64,000 nt of DNA. Origin: Penicillus capitatus (Eukaryota > Plantae > Chlorophyta). The translations under genes and the position numbers were made by a program. The notes below the pieces were generated by a model that was given only the letters and a program-made list of their open reading frames with translations, searched no databases and was not told the DNA's origin. The stretch is from assembly GCA_965649825.1 (NCBI GenBank), contig OZ287707.1, positions 612,292-676,291 of the forward strand. Reading direction: 5' to 3'. The stretch's first letter is position 1. Each line of letters starts with the position of its first letter. Shown here piece after piece: positions 4,488-46,558 of this stretch.

Positions 4488-5939
4488 TTAGCAATAGAAG
4501 AGTGTCGTCATGCCTCCAACGACCAGCGCCATTACGAGACTGGAGAGGAGATTGACTTGATTATTGGAGAGGATATGGACACCCGTAATTCTACGGATGG
4601 AAGAATCAGCCGCCCCTTTGCCAGGGTAGTTCACCACTTTCTGCAGCTTGTCGTCGAAACCTGAGAATTGTAGCGTCGCTCCGAGCAGAGAATCCACAAA
4701 GGAGCCCAAGAGTCCTCCGACAGTTCCCAGTAAAACAAAGGGTAGGTATGGCAGTGCTGCCTGCATGAATCATCCACCTTCTGTCGCAACAGCGATAAGT
4801 GATCAGGGATGGACCTTAAGATGCGGTATGGATGGATAGAAGATCTGTGATGTCATCACGAAGGTGGTCACTCCAATCAACAGTCCTCCAAATGCACTAG
4901 CTCCCAAGCCCAACAGAGAAACGCCACCGTTCGTCCCTTCCATGCTTGAGATGAGCAACGTGTAGATCAACACGACGCAGTGCCTCACCTCTTGGCACTT
5001 TCCTCAGATCGGTGATGAGTCGGGGTTCCGATTTGGAAAGAATGCCAATTTCCGACGCCCATGTATCTCCGCAGCAGCAAGCATAACTTCCCAGACAGCA
5101 GCCAAAGAAGAAGACACTCGCAGTTGACAGGGCGCTACACGGGACACAAACTTCAGCGATGCATTCCTGTGCGCACGCGATCTTTACGTGGCCGAGAGGG
5201 CGATGTCTGGTTGTTGAAAGGCGACGCTCTGGCCAAAGAGCACAGCAAATAGTGTTGGCAATCCTCCATTGCACAGAACTTGTCTCCAGTTTCGTTTACC
5301 ACCCTTTTTGTTCTCCACCGTGAATTTATCTTTTGTCTTGGCTTTGTACTCTGTCCATAGAGAGGAACTGATAAAGAAGGCCAGAAGTTGAGCAAAGACG
5401 ACAGAACTGCTGAAGTGCGTCAAAAAGAAAACAAACCATGCGGCAACGAGGCCTGCATCAGTCAATCGCACACAAGCGCCAGATGCATCTGCGGCCGACC
5501 GGTGGTTGAAAGGGATTCCTTGGCCCAAGAGTAAAAACAAATCGCGGTGGCCAACAGAACGGAAGAAGGTAGTCTAGGAAGAAATCCAACTGCTTGTCCC
5601 CAGACGGTCCCACAAAACACCAGGAGAGCGACTTTGGTCCATCCCTTGCCCTATATCATGATGGAAAAGCACAGAAACAAAAAAGAGAGCGAGTTCTGCG
5701 TTACTTACTTGGAGAGGGGATCCGCCAGAATCGACAGAGATGTCTTCTGCGACGGCATCTCTTATTGTCGCAGAACAGAGTATGGCGGTTCGTTTGTTCG
5801 AGGGCGGATTCTTCGCGACAGGTGTTGGAAAAAGAGGATATATGTATCGATTCGAAGACAGAAAGTGCTGGGGGTGGCCGAGCTTCAGAAATGACGCTCT
5901 TCCAGTGTGCATCTCAGGCACGTTGACGCCGAACTTCAT
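4488..5939 (-). CDS. TMEM19/DUF92-family membrane protein (PGR/VTE6-related family); multi-exon
   Basis: Family motifs [38 protein letters not shown] and [12 protein letters not shown]...[10 protein letters not shown], joined by short introns. The 5' end is uncertain. Confidence 0.85.
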
Positions 5940-6369: not shown

Positions 6370-6597
6370 GTCACATCGTATCTGCCCCGTTTTTCGGGTC
6401 CTGTCCACCAAGGGAAGCTCATAAAGGTTTGCGACTTTACAGGGTTGGTTTTCTCTGGCTCTGAGCGTCAGATTGCTCACTTGTCTAGTGAAGTCTTGTC
6501 AATATTAACGTATAAATCTACAAATTCGAACTTTGAAACGCCACTGCTCTGTAAACGTAAAAAGTCTTCCGGTGAATACCTCTGAAGCGCGGCGATT
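6370..6597 (+). mobile_element. Degenerate type-B LTR remnant (B1)
   Basis: Contains the shared promoter block (TTCTCTGGCTCTG...TGCTCACTTGTCTAG), TATAAAT, and the invariant B motif AAGTCTTCCG. No TSD found; boundaries approximate. Confidence 0.55.
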
Positions 6598-6706
6598 ATG
6601 CATGACATAACTCAACCGCATGTTAAAGTTGTCGCCAAGATTTGCTCCGACGAAGTGATCGTCTTGTTCTGAGGAGTCATCTGTGTCAAAGGGCGCTGCC
6701 TGTCTT

Positions 6707-7698: not shown

Positions 7699-8187
7699 TG
7701 TTACCATTTGCTGTTTCCTCCTGTTCTACCTCGATGGCTGTTTCGGACGGCCCAGTCGTTACCAGGTAGGTCCTCAGAGTGGACAACCACGAGCTCAACA
7801 CTTGCGTCTTCGGAATTTCTTTGCGAAGCGTAGATTTCTCCGTTGTCTATGTATAATACGCTCGGCACCCATTGGAGAAGGTCCGATTGTTCTCCCTGAC
7901 GGAAGCGGTTCAAACGCTCCTGAAAGGTAGGTAAAGTGGAGCGTAGTGAACGATCGCACGCGAGATGTCGTGCTCAGCGTCGTCGTTGGCCAGGGTGGCA
8001 ACGCCTCGGAGAAAAGAAGATAAAAATTAGCGGTCAAAATCTTACAAGGTTTCTTTCCTTTTCGCTTTCACAGAACTACTGAATGCTTCAACGTCCCACC
8101 TTTGTACCGGCCCGACGACATGACTTCCTAGGCAGATGAGTCAGCACGTAAGCAGAGCCAGAGAAGAGCGCCCCCTTCACAGAACGG
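7699..8187 (-). mobile_element. Type-A LTR (A2), 5'-truncated; ORF frameshifted
   Basis: Promoter block TGACTCATCTGCCTAGGAAGTCATGTC, GCCACC-CTG-G at 7993, fragments LANDDAEHDISRAIVHYAPLY / NRFRQGEQSDLLQ / DNGEIYASQRNSEDASVELVV, and 3' end GGTAACA. No TSD. Confidence 0.75.
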
Positions 8188-35809: not shown

Positions 35810-38130
35810 CTAGTTGTGTAGGAGGAGGTCGTTTTGCCACTCGTGCTCTGTAGAGACAGGAATTGCAAGCGTTGGAAGATTAAGTAAGTCATTTAAACGA
35901 CCTGTGGCTAGTCCATCGAGAACGAGACCATAGAAATTAGAGACAAGGGCAACAAGGGACCCACGCGGCTGGAGAGAGAAGAAAAAAAAAAGACATTCAA
36001 ATGCTACCAAGCGTGATCAGTGGAAAATTGATGTCTGTTCAAGTTGCACGTCATTCCGCCCCAAAGTGTCCTTTTATTATCGTAAAAATAACAGCATTGA
36101 AAAACTTAACGAAAGATTGGCAAACGCCAATGGTTTCTCTGAGCTCGCAGACAACAAGCTGTCTGAGCATAAGACCGACTCCTCCTCCTTCCTTTATTGC
36201 TAACCAATGTTGTTTTGAGAATCCTAGTCTAATCAAAAGACACAAGGCGTTTTCTCGTACCTCGAAGCTCTTGGAGGAAAGCATGGTTATCAGGGTGGGG
36301 ATCCCTCCGTCGCTTACAACGGCACGCTGCACATCCATATTGGAAGACAGGTCATAGATGGTCTTCGCCGCATAGACCTTTGTTTCATTGGAATTCTCTT
36401 TCAACACAGCCAGCAAATCGGTCACACCGTCGAATTGGGTCATCAGCGCCCTCGCATGTCGATTGGATGACAGCACAGACAAGGCTTTGACGGAAGCGAG
36501 AACGGCATCTTCGCTCTTGCTCCGTGCGAGGCGAAGAAGGAGCCAAATTGCCTCGGACTCCACAACATTCCGGATTCCTTGGGGGCTTTCGGCGATGTTC
36601 GTTATAATGTGTGCGGCATAACTGCAGGATATAAGACAAGGAGATCTCAGCGCATGGACGATTCTGGATATGACACTCTTTTCCAGAAACCAAGAAATAC
36701 TGATGTCCACATCGGACAAATGCGCCAGGCATCGAAGGGTGTCCAATCGATACACGGCCGTTGGATCGTCGATTTTGAGGAATTGGACAAGCAAAGGAAT
36801 GACGCCAGATTCCAGAAGCACCAGTCTTTGCTCCTCTACCTCTGAAACATTGGCAACGGTTGTTAAAGCATCTGGACTCTTCTCTTCCAAGAGTCTGACC
36901 AAGACGTTGATGACTCCTTTGCGCATGCAAGGCTTGACTTTCTCTGCATCTTTCGTCAAATTGGCCAGGCATCGCACAGCTTCGGCTGCGTACAGCATAT
37001 CGTCGTTTTTAAGAAGAGCAATGATAAAGGGGATGCCTCCCTGTCGCAAGACATTTCTTCGCATCTGAGCTCGCAACGTAAGATTGCTCAATGCCTTGAG
37101 GGCCCAAATCTTGCATACACGTTCGGACTTTGAGTCCAGTAACTCAATCATTTGCCACACGCAGACCGATCCAAAACGGCACAGGTTCTTGGTGTCCAGG
37201 CTGAGGTTGTAGATAAGCTCTGCTATCCATGCCTTCACAATGTAATCGTCTAGTGTCATTAAACATTCCACAAAGACTTTGACGGCACTCAGTTTTATGA
37301 GCTGACAAGCAACAGACGGGACGGAAGAGAGCTGCACCAATGCACGGACCGCATGGTTTTTCCCACTATCACTTGTTTTCTTGGTGACAGATAAGAGCAC
37401 TTCTAAAAGGCCTTTTTCTTGGACAAGTGCCTCTTTTGCTTCTCGGTTGAGGCACATATTCGCAAGAAACTCCATTCCTTTTTCAACCACAGCCATTTTT
37501 GCGACCTTCATAAGACTCATCACCAGATTGAGGGCTTTTGTCTTGAGAATCGCTTTTCTGAAAACGGCTGTCTGCGAGAGGTTCGTCAAAAGACTCAACA
37601 CATTCGGGACACGAGGGTCAGATTTGTCTGCCAAGAACTGTACCACAACGGGCAATGTGCCTTCCTCCACGATGGCTTTTCTGTTCACTGGCCGACGCGA
37701 AAGATTAGAAATCGACCAGGTGGCCGTTGTGCTCTCTTCAGTTCCTTGACATTGCAGACGGGAAACGAGAGATTTAATCTCCACGTCACCAGGCTCGACG
37801 GGAGAGGTGCGTGGAAGATTCTTCAAAGACGGACTGCCAAACCTTTCGCGCATCATTGAACCAATGACTGTGTCAATCACTTCGTAAGTGATACTCTATG
37901 TGCACAACAACACCCCACTGAGACGAGAGAAAGAACAAAGAGAAGGAACGTCGTTTAAGTATTACGAATAACCATGAAACACGTGGTTGTCTAATGACCG
38001 CAGAGTTCAAAACCGACGAAGCGGTCGAATATTGTGCAATGCTCACCATTCGTCCTGTTGAGGAGATACGCGGGCGTACTCCCAAGTGCGTGCTGCGATG
38101 TTTTTCACTATGTATAAGAGAATCGTTCCA
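35810..38130 (-). CDS. Armadillo-repeat protein; terminal exons uncertain
   Basis: The 609-codon ORF 36051-37880 carries repeated ARM units (G.LP.VV.FL...LTNL, GGIPFIIALL, GGIPTLITML). Flanking acceptor sites suggest extra exons. Confidence 0.8.
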
Positions 38131-39828: not shown

Positions 39829-40767
39829 ATGGGAAGCGTCTTCAGTCACACCCGCAAAAGGCGCGCGCGTGTATCGGCTTCAAGGAGAATTGATTGGACG
39901 AGATGTATTCAGGAAGGCCGAGGTGCCCATAACGGAAGTTGATAAAGCGGTGCTCTCGCTCAGGACACAAAAGCGAAAACTCAACGGAGAGCGAAAAAGA
40001 GTGAGATGGAGTGACCTCTAATTGCACTTAGCAATGGCTGGCTTCAGTTAGAAGATATCTTGGAGAAGAATGTCGCTGCAATAAAAGAACTGTTAACACA
40101 GAAACAAAAGAATAAAGCATTGCTTGCATTAAAAAAGAAAAAGATGCGAGAAGAGCAACTGACGAATGTGGACAATTGGCTCATGCAAGTCGAAGGACTC
40201 GTACGTTTCTTTTCTTTTTTCCACTGCGCCTGATGCTTCGGCGACCAGTTGGGATCTCTCGAATTCTCTCAAAAGCAGAACGAAATCTTCGCTGCCCTGC
40301 GATCTGGCGCTGACGCTTTGAAGGGCATTCAGAACGAAGTCCTCTCATTTCTGTTGCATGTATATGCTAAGTGTAGATGTGTTGATCAGGTACGGGTGGA
40401 AGACGTGGATAAACTGACAGCCGACACCGAAGATGCGAAAGCTTATTTGGTCCACACATCAGGCAGATTGGCAATGACCTGAAAGCGCGCTTGGTGTACA
40501 GGACGAGATATATGAAGCCATGGGTATGGATCCGCCAGAAGTCGTAGCCGAGTTGGAAAAAGAGCTGCAACAGCTCGAAGATGCGATGGCCGAAGAGGAG
40601 AAGCTGGCAATGCCAACTGTCCCAACGGTGCGATCTATTCTCCTGTCGGACTCGACATTCAGTACTGTCTTCAGACGAAGGTGGAGGTCACATCAATTGC
40701 AGTGGAAGAGGAGGACAAGAAGCAACCGAAGGAAGAGCCGCCAAAGGAAGAGCCGCTATTGGCTTAA
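39829..40767 (+). CDS. VPS20: ESCRT-III subunit VPS20/CHMP6
   Basis: MGSVFS myristoylation start; ITEVDKAVLSLRTQKRKL, ALLALKKKK..EEQL and Snf7 helices; acidic tail. Confidence 0.88.
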
Positions 40768-40800
40768 CTTTGATGAAAAAGACACGGAACAATAACATCA

Positions 40801-41650
40801 TCATTCTATCGAATCCTCTTCGATTTTGTCGACAACTGAGGTTCCTGTATCATCATCGAATCCTTCCTCCGGATCTAACCACTTGAGATGTTGAAGTTCG
40901 GTGCGGGCGACAAAGAAATTAAATCCACTGACCGTCCTGTCCCCATCCTTCATCGTAATATCCGTCATCTGTGGAACGGCTATCATATCCATGCCTGCCT
41001 TATGGAGTGTCCGTCTTGCCCATGTCATTCCGACGATGGACCGTCCCACAGCTCGTGGCCCAATGGCAACGACCTTTGCACTTTGAGCAACTTTTAGAGC
41101 GCGTGCTATGCGCCCGCCGATGGCGCGGCCGGACCCAAGAGACTTAACCCATATCTCCTCCATACTCTCTTTGGTGTCCTCCCCGTCAACAGTGAACTGA
41201 TCGGTCGATGAAACGCCGAATGAGAGGCTAGAAACCCTTTCTTTGTCTGATCCTTCTCCGTGGTTGACGCGGAAAGAGAGGCTTGATCCTGTTGTAGCCG
41301 GCGTCTCTCTCAGGAATTGCCGAGCCACGTGCAAAGACTTTGCCGTCTTGTTTACTGCAGCAATGCCTGTGGCTTTCATGCAAATAGGGAATTCGTTGCG
41401 TGGGCTCTTTCGCAAAACCGCGGCGATCTTGCCAGCCAGTTTTCTGATGTCGCCGTCGGCCGGAACAAAAAGGTCTCTTAATGGCTGACGACTGAATAAC
41501 AGGTTCGACATTGAGCCGCCTAAGAAGGACGTACGGGGAAGTCGTCTCTTTAGATTCGGTCTGTGCAGAGGCGACGATGCTCCTTCGCGCCGTCGTCGTC
41601 GCCGTCAAACTTCGTAGATTCATCGATCTCGAAAGTAAAAGACGAAACAT
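40801..41650 (-). CDS. Organelle-targeted protein with two tandem SpoVS-like domains
   Basis: LAGKIAAVLRK...KATGIAAVNKTAKSLHVARQFL and AIGGRIARALK...VVAIGPRAVGRSIVGMTWARRTL..AGMDMIAVPQMTDI match SpoVS. R/S/T-rich presequence; 43-nt intron. Confidence 0.75.
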
Positions 41651-42277: not shown

Positions 42278-44539
42278 ATGAAGGCGAGTGGCCTGGTAGT
42301 TCCCAGTTCGGAGCGTCCCTTCACTCTCCGCCCGACTCGACTCCACAAGTTCGCATACCAGTCCGCCCCTAAACACTCCGATATCTTTTCTGCCAGGCCG
42401 CGTTCGTTTTCTTCATCTCTCGATTGTCGCAGCGACGGCGAATCCGACATTTTTCGCAAATCCAGTGGCTCTTCGCATTTTAGCGGCCGGCCGCTTTCAT
42501 CACAGGGCGTTCTGGAAGGAGGAAGAATACACGCAGGTCACAGTTTTTCCTACGATTACCAGTTGCATCAGAACACAGTACTGGTCTCGCGTTCATGGAG
42601 CAATCTTCTGCTGAAAGACGAAGGCCTGGAGATATCCACAGAGAGACGCAATGACATACCACACTGTGCTGTGTTGCTGTCTGCTATTCGACAAGAAGTG
42701 ATCGATGTTTCCGAGGCTGCGGATGTCGAGGTTCAGATCGAAGACTATGGCCCACTGGTGCGTTTGTCCGATGGATCGGCTTTTCGTCCAGTACGTTTCC
42801 TTCTCACTCCCTCTGCCAATTCACTCATCCATACAGGGGAAATGCGGACGATGAACGTACACTGCTATCGAAACGCGCTAATTCACTTAACTGTGCTTTT
42901 CTGTACAGGGTGGACGGAATTCCGATGTCGAGAAGCTCTCAGGGGGTTGCATTGGCGAAATGCTTAAAGGGCAGCAGGTCATGTTGCGATGCAAAGGTTA
43001 TGCGTCCTTCTATCAAGCATTCGCCGCCCTGAGACGCGTCAATCAACGATTCGCATCTTATGGTCGACAGCTTTACTTTAACATTCTCGCGAGAAAGGAC
43101 TTGATGGAAGGGACGGGTAAACTGGTCGCGCAATATGAATTCTATCTCCACGAGAGGCAGTTGGACGTCGATTTTCGTTTACGCATGTAACAGACGTCAC
43201 ATCGTTTTTGTTCACGATGCGTCTGAACGCTGCGTCGAGATTGCAGCCCTCGAACGTCTGTTGGGGAGGCTCTCCCTTGCAGATCACTCGAAGTGGAAAT
43301 TCTTTCCCTCCTCGAGAAAAACGGAGACGGATCTGCACGCAGGCGGTTCTCCAGGGCATCCGTTTGCCAGGTCTCCTCACATCGCCCACTCCCGTCTTCA
43401 CGGAAGAAGAAGTCGTTCTCCGACTGAAAAGATCCGCAGAATAGCGTAAATGATGAATCTAGGCACTCTACGCTGCGAAGAGGAATACACCCCCTGAGTC
43501 CAACAGACTGCACCGAGCCTTCTATACTTCAGAACTGAATGGCATCATCCGTGATCCACATCTGATGACGATTCCTTGGGACGATCGTCTTTTCCTACAC
43601 GGACACGGAGCTTTTGAGATGTGTCACATGTCACAAGGATACCTCTATCTATTCGACACTCATGTGGAACGATTTCTCCTGTCCGTTTCGAGAGCGGGAT
43701 TGAAATCGCCGATGTCGGAGGCGGAATTAAAAAGAAAGATTCTTCACACAGCTGCTGCTGGTAACAAGCTCAATGGCTTTGTACGATTCTGGATGTCGGG
43801 AGGACGCGGAACTCTAAGTCTAAGTGTCAAGGGAGGAAAGGGTCCTGCCTTCTACGTCCTGACATCCTGCGAGAAACCCTATCAAAACTACGATCTGGAG
43901 ACAGGATTCTCAGCCATAACGACCAAAGTGCCCATTCACGACAGCTACTACACGACCATGATATCGAACAACAATCTGCCAATCGTCTTGGGCCAACTCG
44001 ATGCTGATCAACGGGGAAAAGAGCTGGCAGGGATCGTCCTGAGATGGCACGTTTTGGATGGCAGGTGTGTTTTAGGGTATCTTGGTGGATGAAGACACGA
44101 ATGTCATCAATGCAGGGGAATATGACATCGCTATCATTACTGACAACGATGTCTTGGTCGTTACACCTAATTCTGAGTATTTAACAGGAGCCATACTCCG
44201 CAGAATCCGACAACTGGTCGAACGAGTACGCATCTCCCTCTCTGTTCTGCTGTTCTCATTCTACGTGTTTTGTCTAAGGGCGAGGGCAGATCCATGTCTG
44301 TCAAATCCGTCCAATCGCGATTGTTCTCAGTCGATGAGGCAATTCACGCACAGGAGGTCTTTGTCACACATCCACATCTTCCTGTGATGGGTGTCGTGGA
44401 ATGGGATGGCATTGTGGTTGGAGATGGCACCTCGGGCATCAACACAGCTGCCTTTAGCGAAATGATCGTCGAAGACTCTGAGCCACGAGAGAACTCATAT
44501 GTCCATACAGAGATCCCTTATGGCTACATGACAATGTGA
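42278..44539 (+). CDS. SpoVS-like domain fused to a class-IV (D-amino-acid/ADC-lyase-like) aminotransferase fold lacking catalytic residues
   Basis: FYTSELNGIIRDPHLMTIPWDDRLFLHGHGAFE...HVERF matches plant DAAT/ADCL, but MKSVNYLP is MISNNNLP here. The upstream exon is in SpoVS register. Start codon uncertain. Confidence 0.75.
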
Positions 44540-45010
44540 AGGCAACAGACACTGCCCAGACACTCGACGCTTCTTCGGTGTCGCCCAGAAGAAACCGATC
44601 GATGACAATCGAATGTAAAAATGCAAGCAATTGCGCTTTTCCAGTAGACCGTGTGGCTTTGATCGATATTCCCTCATCGTCTTGGCATCCACATCCTGTA
44701 TTCAGATCGGAATGATCTTGTCCTTTCGGTGCAATGATGATCGACTTTGTGATGCGTGCTTCGCTCGGAAGGCTCTGGATTTGTCTTCTTGAGCGTCTTG
44801 TCGTGTTTGTTGTGATGCGCTTTTCTTGCGATCGCATCCAAATTGCCAAGAGTCTTCTTGGCTGCAGACATGGAGTGTTACTGCACCGTGGTTACAGAAT
44901 GGGGAGATCGGTATCCGACGACGACAACAATTGCAAATCAAAAAATACGAAACAATCGTAACGGAGATAAGAATAAGCAAATATCGGATCGGCATTCGCA
45001 TGTCAACCAT

Positions 45011-46558
45011 CTATACGATCTCCCTTGTCGGAATGACGCTGCCGGTCTTCTGCCAATAATCAATCGCTTGACTTACACCTGACCCAGGGGTAATACTCAC
45101 ACCGGCGTCAATCAAAGCCATCTCTGTGCCACACAGAGCACTGCACATCATCAATTCATCCATATTGCCCAGATGCCCTATCCGGAACACCTTTCCGTTA
45201 ACCTGCACACATCACACTATCGCGCCAGACGTCACACAAGTCGATGCCTGACCTTCAACAGTCCAACGCCCAGAGAGAGATTGTACTTTGCCAGTGCATT
45301 CTTGATGACGACATTGCTGTCAATGTGTTCAGGTGTTTTGACAACCGTCAAGGTATCACTGTTCCATCGTGGATCACTGCAAAGGAGTTCCAGTCCCCAA
45401 CCTTTCACAGCTTTTCTCGTGCCTTCCGCCAATCGATGATGGCGAGCGACAACATTTTTCATGCCTTCTTCCCTCAGAAGCGCCAGGGATTCTTGCAGAC
45501 CATAGAGAAGATGCAGACTCGGTGTGTAAGGAGTGTTTCCACTCGGATTGGTCTTCAGCTGGTCCTGGAAATCGTAGTAGCAACGCGGCAACGTTGCCGT
45601 TTCCATAGCAGCCAATGCCTAAACCGCCATCTCACTGCTGCATGACCATGTGCTTTCAGCAGACCTTGGGAGAAGCGCAGACGACGGTGAGCCCTGTTGG
45701 AAGGGAGAGAGCTTTCTGAGATCCGGTCACGGCGACATCTACTCGCCACTTGTCAAACTGAAAATCCAGAGCGCCGATTGAAGACACGCCATCCACCAAT
45801 AGAAGCGCAGGATGGTTCGCTGCGTCCATCGCCCTTCGACAACCAGCAATGTCGCTCGTCACTCCAGTTGTCGTTTCGTTGTGCACGATGCAGACGGCCT
45901 TGATCTTCTTCTCTGTATCTTTCTTCAGAATCTAATCTCACTCAAAATGAACATCTGCAAAAGAGTGAGATATGCGACCTCTTCAATTTTGGCCTCGTCG
46001 GCGCCGTTGCCCCAGCGCTCATCGAATACAGTGACATTGAGTCCCATTCTCTCCATCATATCGATCCACAAGAGTGAGAACAGTCCATAACGAAACGCAA
46101 CGACGTGATCGCCAGGAGACAAGGTGTTGGTCAAAGCACTTTCCCAACCACCTGTTCCTGTTCCCGAGAAGATGAAAGTGGTCCCCTGAGTCGTGTTGAA
46201 AATCATCTTTGACTCTTCGAGCATTTTTTTGAAGAGACTGGGAAACCATGGCTCTCTGTGATTTTGACCCGGCATATGCATCGCCCTCAACACGCGTTCG
46301 TGGATATTCACCGGTCCAGGAACGTGGAGGTGATTGCGACCAGGAGGGGTATAAGAGAAATCAGCCACGGGCTTCGGCACCGTTCCCGTCGACTCCGCCT
46401 CCTCCTAGAAACATCGCACGGTCGGCGTCATGCATGAGAACACCTTGACGCACAGCAGGAGCAGCCAAGGCGCTCAGACTGGAACGAAAGAGAGCAAGAG
46501 ATCTGATGTTTGTTAGCGTGTTCTTTCGGAGCATCGTTCGCACACCGCCGCTCAACAT
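45011..46558 (-). CDS. AGT1: Serine:glyoxylate / alanine:glyoxylate aminotransferase
   Basis: PGRNHLHVPGPVNI, GTGTGGWESALTNTLSPGD, HNETTTGV, VDGVSSIG, TGSQKALSLP (PLP Lys), PYTPSLHLLYGL and FRIGHLG. Confidence 0.95.

Follow-up and report, generated by a model that had tools for sequence, protein, structure and literature searches.

SpoVS (PF04232; Protein Data Bank (PDB) entries 2eh1 and 2ek0), of the Alba-like superfamily, is a bacterial protein described as small and with a single domain (PMC2732212), and nucleic-acid binding by SpoVS itself is only predicted (PMC2732212, PMC11621453). The literature that we searched on SpoVS deals with the bacterial protein only. The fold-type IV enzymes that use pyridoxal 5'-phosphate (PLP), among them D-amino-acid aminotransferase (DAAT), branched-chain aminotransferase (BCAT) and aminodeoxychorismate lyase (PF01063), share another well-studied fold. 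Here we describe a locus that brings relatives of both groups together, within a 64,000-nucleotide stretch of DNA from the green alga Penicillus capitatus (contig OZ287707.1; the whole stretch is called the window below). The window sequence is eukaryotic and lies on a nuclear contig with short spliceosomal introns, so that the algal SpoVS-type genes, unlike those of bacteria, are nuclear and eukaryotic. At positions 42278-44539 a first-pass annotation had placed a single gene encoding a catalytically dead class-IV aminotransferase fused to a SpoVS/Alba-like domain. The best joint explanation of our results, with a probability of roughly 0.55, is that two abutting plus-strand genes lie here, the first encoding a SpoVS-like protein and the second a constrained pseudoenzyme without the Schiff-base Lys.

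A fold-type IV family without the catalytic lysine

The downstream gene of the pair (43217-44539, plus strand) has four exons and encodes an aminotransferase-like protein of 389 aa. A profile of the five-member family, searched against the PDB, matched fold-type IV enzymes end to end; in the best match, 5mqz (E=9.7e-25), profile positions 91-351 aligned to residues 20-275 of a 290-residue BCAT, and the class-IV PLP fold is thus intact, as the first-pass annotation had proposed. The largest exon, run against the PDB with phmmer, also returned fold-type IV enzymes, matched over their whole length; among solved structures, archaeal and bacterial BCATs and a Bacillus DAAT come closest (profile E=1e-24 to 3e-17). 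The homology is full-length and takes in both fold domains, and the phosphate-binding Arg of E-H-x-x-R is retained (THVERF vs EHIDRL).

Unlike these enzymes, the algal members have all lost both the Schiff-base Lys and the pyridine-binding Glu. The peptides on which the first-pass annotation had built this claim, MISNNNLP (43958-43981), INAGEYD (44106-44126) and LTGAI (44181-44195), are present in the plus-strand frames it gave between 42278 and 44539. In the first of them, Ile (ATA, 43961-43963) aligns to the Schiff-base Lys, the K of 'IKSLNYL' in 5mqz and 5e25; six relatives have Q at this position (Caulerpa, P0007, P0009, and the loci L004 and L008) or L (Bryopsis). In the second, Ala (44112-44114) aligns to the pyridine-binding Glu of the solved enzymes, where the 'SEG' of BCATs reads 'NAG' in the window and 'STG' or 'SAG' in the relatives. 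Overall, 7/7 family members have I, Q or L instead of the Lys and A, S or T instead of the Glu. The third proposed loss, that of the Thr in the phosphate-binding G-x-T, holds for the window, where Ile (44193-44195) aligns to the Thr of 'GIT', but not for Caulerpa (SVT) and Bryopsis (GLT), which keep the Thr.

The loss of these residues was not accompanied by relaxed selection. The ratio of nonsynonymous to synonymous substitution rates (dN/dS) against L008, a close relative of the window locus, is 0.15 (dS ~0.42), or 0.13 without the N-terminus, and many positions are invariant in the family, e.g., ILHTAAA..LNGFVRFW..GGRGT, HD.Y, SN..LP and EWDG; because of this ratio and these positions, the protein appears to be functional rather than decaying. 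A pseudogene was rejected on the same ratio and on the dN/dS of 0.49, also against L008, of the upstream gene. Two conserved features set the algal family further apart from the fold-type IV enzymes, an extension at the N-terminus (GIRLPGL..PTP) and a tail at the C-terminus (EDSEPRE.SY.HTEIPYGY). An alternative active-site Lys was looked for, and no column of the five-sequence family alignment holds an invariant Lys anywhere. Taken together, the family-wide loss of Lys and Glu, the lack of an invariant Lys and the strong purifying selection support the view, first put forward from the window, that the protein is a class-IV-fold pseudoenzyme under constraint and not a decaying gene.

Conceivably, the protein might still be an enzyme that binds PLP non-covalently, employs another lysine or carries out other chemistry. 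The retained phosphate-binding Arg, the G-x-T Thr kept in Caulerpa and Bryopsis, and the strong constraint on the protein would all fit such a role. We consider it very improbable, since no Lys is shared by the aligned family, the position of the Schiff-base Lys is occupied by chemically unlike residues (I, Q, L), and the Glu that holds the pyridine nitrogen is lost too. The scores against NCBIfam point the same way: with 15 models, all were far under the curated cut-offs, the best being 84 vs 320 bits (PRK06680).

The closest relatives of the protein are found in siphonous green algae. Caulerpa lentillifera EP00210 g850.t1 shares 58-61% identity with it and Bryopsis sp. KO-2023 BSKO_01851 shares 45-47%; the remaining close relatives are one JGI metagenome protein and one ENA fragment, and none was found beyond these, Caulerpa and Bryopsis. 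The first full-length protein search gave a single match above the cut-off, and two metagenome scans yielded no extra orthologous loci, returning distant bacterial enzymes only. Family members are deposited as 'hypothetical protein' or as unnamed gene models only. The family occurs in both Bryopsidales suborders and, as far as the searches reach, appears confined to Bryopsidales. Because its closest relatives are those of Caulerpa, then Bryopsis, the protein places the host in or near Bryopsidales, nearer Caulerpa than Bryopsis.

In the literature searched, no Lys-less, strongly constrained fold-type IV family is described, and we know of none. This clade and the nuclear algal SpoVS-type genes are new forms of known families. 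The Lys-less family adds a pseudoenzyme branch to the PLP fold, and its small, soluble-looking protein offers a clean case in which to study what role this fold may have without cofactor chemistry.

The junction between the two frames

Upstream of the aminotransferase-like gene, on the same strand, lies a two-exon frame (42278-43190) whose 286-aa product is called the module hereafter. The first-pass annotation had joined the two into one protein. The SpoVS-like frame, however, stops at a TAA (43188-43190), and joining it to the next frame needs an unproven, atypically long intron; the fusion architecture probably arose because two closely packed genes were taken for a single one. We compared the junction with that of L008, of the more distant L004, and of L002/L003, the most distant loci, as well as with L007, a Caulerpa-like contig that carries an aminotransferase-like gene and a SpoVS gene.

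Several features of the upstream frame point to a genuine gene end. When the window, L008, L004 and L002 are aligned, their stop codons fall into a single column, after tails reading VDFRLRM, VPIRLPM and ISLDLKK. The window, L008 and L004 share the stretch ATGTAACA, which contains TGTAA at the module stop, without any difference. In the ulvophyte-trebouxiophyte-chlorophyte (UTC) clade, UGUAA serves as the poly(A) signal, and cleavage follows 15-27 nt downstream (PMC1868727); by that distance the module mRNA would end just before the next ATG. TGTAA also follows the stop of a neighbouring aminotransferase gene (AGT, below). After the aminotransferase-like stop, it is found at +72 in L008, where, as in the window, it lies within a conserved CGAATGTAAAA, and in L004 it overlaps that stop (GTG TAA; ~7900-7906). 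This presence near other stops of these loci fits UGUAA as a poly(A) signal in this lineage.

The downstream frame likewise looks like a gene of its own. Its ATG at 43217 is the first past an in-frame stop and is followed by a basic, presequence-like peptide, MRLNAASRLQPS..., the first 7 codons being 100% identical to L008. An equivalent start ATG was found in L004, in L007 and in the Caulerpa (379 aa) and Bryopsis (386 aa) models, and the latter three genes are stand-alone and begin at the equivalent Met, the Caulerpa and Bryopsis models without the upstream region. Conversely, a DUF92 gene in convergent orientation directly follows the module in L002/L003, and the module is thus autonomous there. 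The expectation that orthologues would share the fused architecture was therefore not borne out: the Caulerpa and Bryopsis models lack the upstream region, L007 lacks the module, and L002/L003 have the module alone. A tblastn search of the module and SpoVS proteins against the 18-kb Bryopsis locus gave no match. Orthologues of the Lys-less protein do exist in other algae, namely Caulerpa and Bryopsis.

A few observations weigh against two abutting genes. The 26-nt gap leaves almost no space for a conventional promoter or 5' untranslated region (UTR) of the second gene, and a phase-compatible GT...AG intron that would remove the stop exists in the window, L008 and L004. In the window, it would run from GAC/GTCGAT at 43167 to 43246 or 43282, and in L004 from GAA/GTCCCA at 6560 to 6622 or 6676; other introns of this genome also have GTC donors. 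Such splicing, either constitutive or alternative to polyadenylation at TGTAA, would remove both stop and ATG and give, from a single gene, a fusion protein of ~650 aa, possibly as an alternative isoform. In its favor, the donor falls at the same Val codon (GTC) in the three loci, GTC donors are genuine here (the AGT introns and the one at 43412), and the 26-nt spacing is easier to explain within one transcription unit.

We nevertheless regard this fusion as unlikely, since the would-be intron does not behave like one. The junction (43167-43237) is identical to L008 at 67/71 positions (94%) without any indel (P=5e-8 against the neutral identity of ~68% between the window and L008, as estimated from introns 1 and 4, the 3' UTR and dS ~0.4; P=6e-4 against the module exons, ~80%), whereas real introns are 65-86% identical and 3/4 carry an indel. 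The seven residues past the sole conserved candidate donor are conserved as protein. The seven window introns for which a model was built (4 in the gene pair, 3 in AGT) measure 46-53 nt; the joining intron would be longer, with 80 or 116 nt, or 63 or 117 nt in the case of L004. Feasible donor/acceptor pairs number 20 in the window and are hence common by chance. Further against a fusion are the stop shared by four organisms, in one of which the module stands alone, the TGTAA conserved at that stop, and the ATG and presequence-like start retained by the downstream frame, with its stand-alone Caulerpa and Bryopsis models. A second donor, GTAACA (43187), was rejected, as L004 has no compatible acceptor and the acceptor is not conserved in L008.

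Two proteins might alternatively be made from one bicistronic mRNA, the second frame being reached by leaky scanning or by termination-reinitiation. Green-algal polycistronic loci (Gallaher et al. 2021, PMC7896298; PMC11291117) likewise have same-strand frames tens of bases apart, the median distance between bicistronic frames being 40 nt in Auxenochlorella and 183 nt in Chlamydomonas (PMC11291117). The host is a chlorophyte, and the gap here, 26 nt in the window and L008 and 33 nt in L004, lies within the range reported for bicistronic loci. The junction is also conserved at the nucleotide level: a predicted hairpin (43192-43227; L008 5344-5379) encloses the second AUG, CAGACG(UCA)CAUCG-loop-CGAUGCGUCUG, and all three spacer differences between the window and L008 are located in its loop. 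The L004 spacer is predicted to form a different small hairpin, CCAUC-UUUU-GAUGG.

Yet the hallmarks of these loci are the opposite of those seen here, where the upstream frame is long, not ATG-depleted and ends with a conserved UGUAA. It measures 861 nt against reported medians of ~300-600 nt, and it contains 18 ATGs (7 in frame) where 12.9 +/- 3.4 are expected, which by the criterion of PMC11291117 would block leaky scanning. The upstream cistrons of true polycistrons lack UGUAA (PMC7896298). RNA folding gave no unusual stability at the junction (z -0.2 to -0.6), and an Rfam search of the window returned no match. A bicistron thus seems improbable to us.

Judged on these comparisons, two separate proteins are likely, and within that reading most weight would go to separate transcripts that abut or overlap. 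Little room between genes appears to be normal in this lineage: in L007 (1816-1890), just ~45-70 nt separate the start codon of the SpoVS gene from that of the divergent aminotransferase-like gene, which implies very short 5' UTRs or overlapping promoters. If there are two separate proteins, the statement that no described protein has this architecture becomes moot. For the annotation of compact algal genomes, the junction calls for caution, as frames 26 bases apart can mimic a fusion while bearing the signals of separate genes.

The upstream protein and its likeness to SpoVS

An unambiguous SpoVS gene lies next to the pair. The divergent minus-strand neighbour of the module is a clear member of the SpoVS family with two tandem domains; the protein matches PDB 2eh1 at E=4.6e-5, and each domain matches Thermus SpoVS. 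For the module itself, the upstream region was run exhaustively with HMMER against 1.84 billion representative proteins and retrieved its own frames and P0004, P0005 and P0006 only; a later profile search added P0010 as a homologue. Contigs carrying module homologues yielded the further loci L008, L004 and L002/L003, all with two exons. Exon 2, which begins with GGRNSDVEKLSGG... at 42909, aligns gap-free among the window, L008, L004 and L002.

We compared four module orthologues with nine SpoVS domains (Thermus 2eh1 and both domains of four algal neighbours) using hhalign. Module residues 101-170 aligned to SpoVS 1-73 (P=1.3e-4) in the register that the first-pass annotation had proposed, and the two remained in register over beta1-alpha1-beta2-alpha2-beta3. 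With the C-terminal half alone P was 6.6e-5, and the probability was 53-64% across runs. The observed score of 29.0 compares with a mean of 10.2 (sd 2.3, maximum 18.7) in 100 column shuffles. Additionally, the whole module could be aligned colinearly, though weakly (P=6.5e-3), with the whole tandem-SpoVS neighbour across its two domains, and it may be a very diverged paralogue of that protein. The residue spacing offered earlier as a SpoVS signature, G-x5-QA-x2-A-x11-G-x2-L, is present in the window, but its QA is specific to the window, the orthologues reading PT, RT and RT.

Structure prediction gave a more ambiguous picture. AlphaFold models of the upstream protein, from a single sequence and from 5 rows, were of low confidence (predicted local distance difference test (pLDDT) 43-44), and the exon-2 frame has no Pfam SpoVS match on record. 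A Foldseek search of the PDB (350,542 chains) with the low-confidence model found nothing at E<=1e-3. These three results count against the SpoVS-like part of our explanation. In the C-terminal half (pLDDT ~60), beta-alpha-beta-beta was predicted and helix 1 was not. The low-root-mean-square-deviation (rmsd) Foldseek matches of this poor model are SpoVS entries only, namely 2eh1_A, 2ek0 and 9a7h_B (a B. subtilis SpoVS model); the first of these ranked fourth in the search (rmsd 2.7 A over 62 columns, probability 1.00, E=0.08).

The upstream protein might therefore instead be a lineage-specific alpha/beta protein whose likeness to SpoVS is convergent or accidental. This is a real possibility, though the less probable one, and it would account for the empty pairwise phmmer result, the missing Pfam record, an hhalign probability of just 53-64%, the QA motif that orthologues do not conserve, and the poor structural model. 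It is harder to reconcile with two independent methods converging on one very small family and on one register, with 0/100 column shuffles coming near the observed score, or with the weak colinear alignment to both neighbour domains. NCBIfam failed even on the true SpoVS domains of the neighbour and is uninformative on this question. We therefore consider a SpoVS/Alba-like fold of the C-terminal module domain (residues ~195-286) plausible and rather favor it: the proposed register held at P ~1e-4, while a Pfam record and a good model are missing. The match of the upstream protein to SpoVS is sub-threshold, and the protein differs from SpoVS by ~100 aa of additional alpha/beta sequence and by a long N-terminus that resembles a presequence.

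The first exon of the module, for which P0004 and P0005 supply homologous reading frames, is longer than first thought. Because VRFLLTPSANSLIH, which lies past ~42790, is conserved in three relatives, the exon extends not to ~42790 but to 42856, where the donor GTACAC (42857) opens a 52-nt intron; a donor at 42791 (118-nt intron) was rejected on the same conservation. The intron site is shared with L004 (40 nt), L002 (GTAGGA...TTTCAG) and L008, and the window intron is 65% identical to that of L008, with a 2-nt indel. In L008 (~4505-4512; window ~42360-42366), a C-run has one extra C, which throws the module ATG out of frame and is either a long-read homopolymer error or a real start-codon shift. 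In L002 (1593-1603), the last module codons overlap the end of the convergent DUF92 frame by 11 nt.

Gene pairing, possible function and gene models

In L008, L004 and L007, too, an orthologue of the tandem-SpoVS gene lies in this divergent position. In L007, from which the module is absent, this gene directly abuts the aminotransferase-like gene with nothing between. Because L007 has the pairing without the module, the association of a SpoVS-type gene with the Lys-less gene appears to be older than the presence of the module at this site. Nuclear SpoVS genes, true and degenerate, beside a pseudoenzyme across siphonous green algae lead to a concrete hypothesis of partnership.

We propose that the product of the first gene begins with a presequence-like segment, continues with an alpha/beta region and closes with a domain that is most likely SpoVS/Alba-like, and that the gene would end at the conserved TAA within the conserved, candidate TGTAA poly(A) signal. 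The Lys-less protein would keep its fold and act non-catalytically, as a ligand-binding or scaffold subunit, working with the adjacent Alba-like SpoVS-type proteins, which are presumably nucleic-acid-binding, possibly in an organelle. Presequence-like N-termini in both plus-strand proteins and in the L007 copy of the SpoVS gene, which has a 60-aa presequence-like extension, suggest organellar targeting. We offer this role, a non-catalytic subunit that partners Alba-like proteins, tentatively and with considerable doubt. A more specific version appears quite unlikely: Bryopsidales would have a conserved, lineage-specific set of three genes, for the tandem-SpoVS, the SpoVS-like and the Lys-less protein, whose products assemble in an organelle into a nucleic-acid-binding or regulatory complex, with the dead aminotransferase sensing amino acids, keto acids or PLP; in the lineage of the window, competition between polyadenylation and splicing at the TGTAA stop could also give free and fused forms.

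Dead enzymes repurposed as non-catalytic subunits have precedents, such as the fructokinase-like proteins of the plastid RNA polymerase complex. There, too, an enzyme fold has stayed under selection after catalytic loss, and here such a fold would lie beside putative nucleic-acid-binding genes. The likeness is one of analogy only.

The features of the locus are collected in Table 1.

Table 1. Coordinates of the gene pair, its junction and the genes on either side (positions in the window; a slash marks a splice junction).
Feature	Position	Strand	Description
Tandem-SpoVS gene	40801-41511	-	236 aa, two SpoVS domains; PF04232 on record; divergent from module
Module exon 1	42278-42856	+	ATG at 42278; S/R-rich presequence-like N-terminus (~95 aa), then alpha/beta region
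Module intron	42857-42908	+	52 nt, GTACAC...ACAG/G
Module exon 2	42909-43190	+	Putative SpoVS-like domain, tail VDFRLRM, TAA stop 43188-43190
TGTAA, candidate poly(A) signal	43186-43190	+	Overlaps module stop codon
Spacer between the two frames	43191-43216	+	26 nt; 23/26 bases as in L008
Aminotransferase-like gene, exon 1	43217-43411	+	Own ATG, basic presequence-like start, conserved AVLQGIRLPGLLTSPTPVF
Aminotransferase-like gene, intron	43412-43462	+	51 nt, GTCGTT...CTAG/G
Aminotransferase-like gene, exon 2	43463-44026	+	N-domain, Lys-less motif MISNNNLP; PF01063 in database record
Aminotransferase-like gene, GC-AG intron	44027-44075	+	49 nt, GCAGGG...TTTTAG/G
Aminotransferase-like gene, exon 3	44076-44225	+	Ala for pyridine-binding Glu, Ile for Thr of G-x-T
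Aminotransferase-like gene, intron	44226-44278	+	53 nt, GTACGC...CTAAG/G
Aminotransferase-like gene, exon 4	44279-44539	+	TGA stop; highly conserved C-terminal tail EDSEPRENSYVHTEIPYGYMTM
TGTAA, candidate poly(A) signal	44614-44618	+	75 nt past aminotransferase-like stop
AGT gene	45011-46380	-	Alanine/serine-glyoxylate-type aminotransferase (class V); convergent with Lys-less gene

The exon borders of the aminotransferase-like gene were set using Caulerpa, L004 and L008 as guides. Excision of the intron at 43412-43462 reproduces the Caulerpa spacing exactly (6 + 19 residues), and with the GC donor at 44027 the protein aligns to Caulerpa without gaps (..DLGVLVD..); the counterpart of this GC-AG intron is also GC-AG in L008 (GCAAGC) and has a GTAATG donor in L004. 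A GT donor at 44034 for the third intron was rejected, since L008 reads GCC there and the GC donor fits Caulerpa, as was a short intron at 43234-43282 in exon 1, which breaks out of the conserved frame. Compared to L008, the introns at 43412-43462 and 44226-44278 (the latter 66% identical) each carry a 2-nt indel; such indels in 2/3 aminotransferase-like introns and in the module intron fit non-coding sequence. The three AGT introns (46-50 nt; donors GTCGCA, GTCTGC and GTCAGG; acceptors mostly AG/G) were taken as a guide to how introns look in this genome, where C or A seems usual at donor position +3.

Beyond the tandem-SpoVS gene, a plus-strand frame (40520-40795) with a Snf7/CHMP-like C-terminal sequence ends 5 nt from the SpoVS gene stop, so their 3' UTRs would overlap if both ends are real. 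Further out (36051-37880, minus strand; flanks of L001, L004 and L008), a large armadillo-repeat gene and two small ARMH5-like frames keep their synteny with the SpoVS gene, as seen in the window, L004 and L008.

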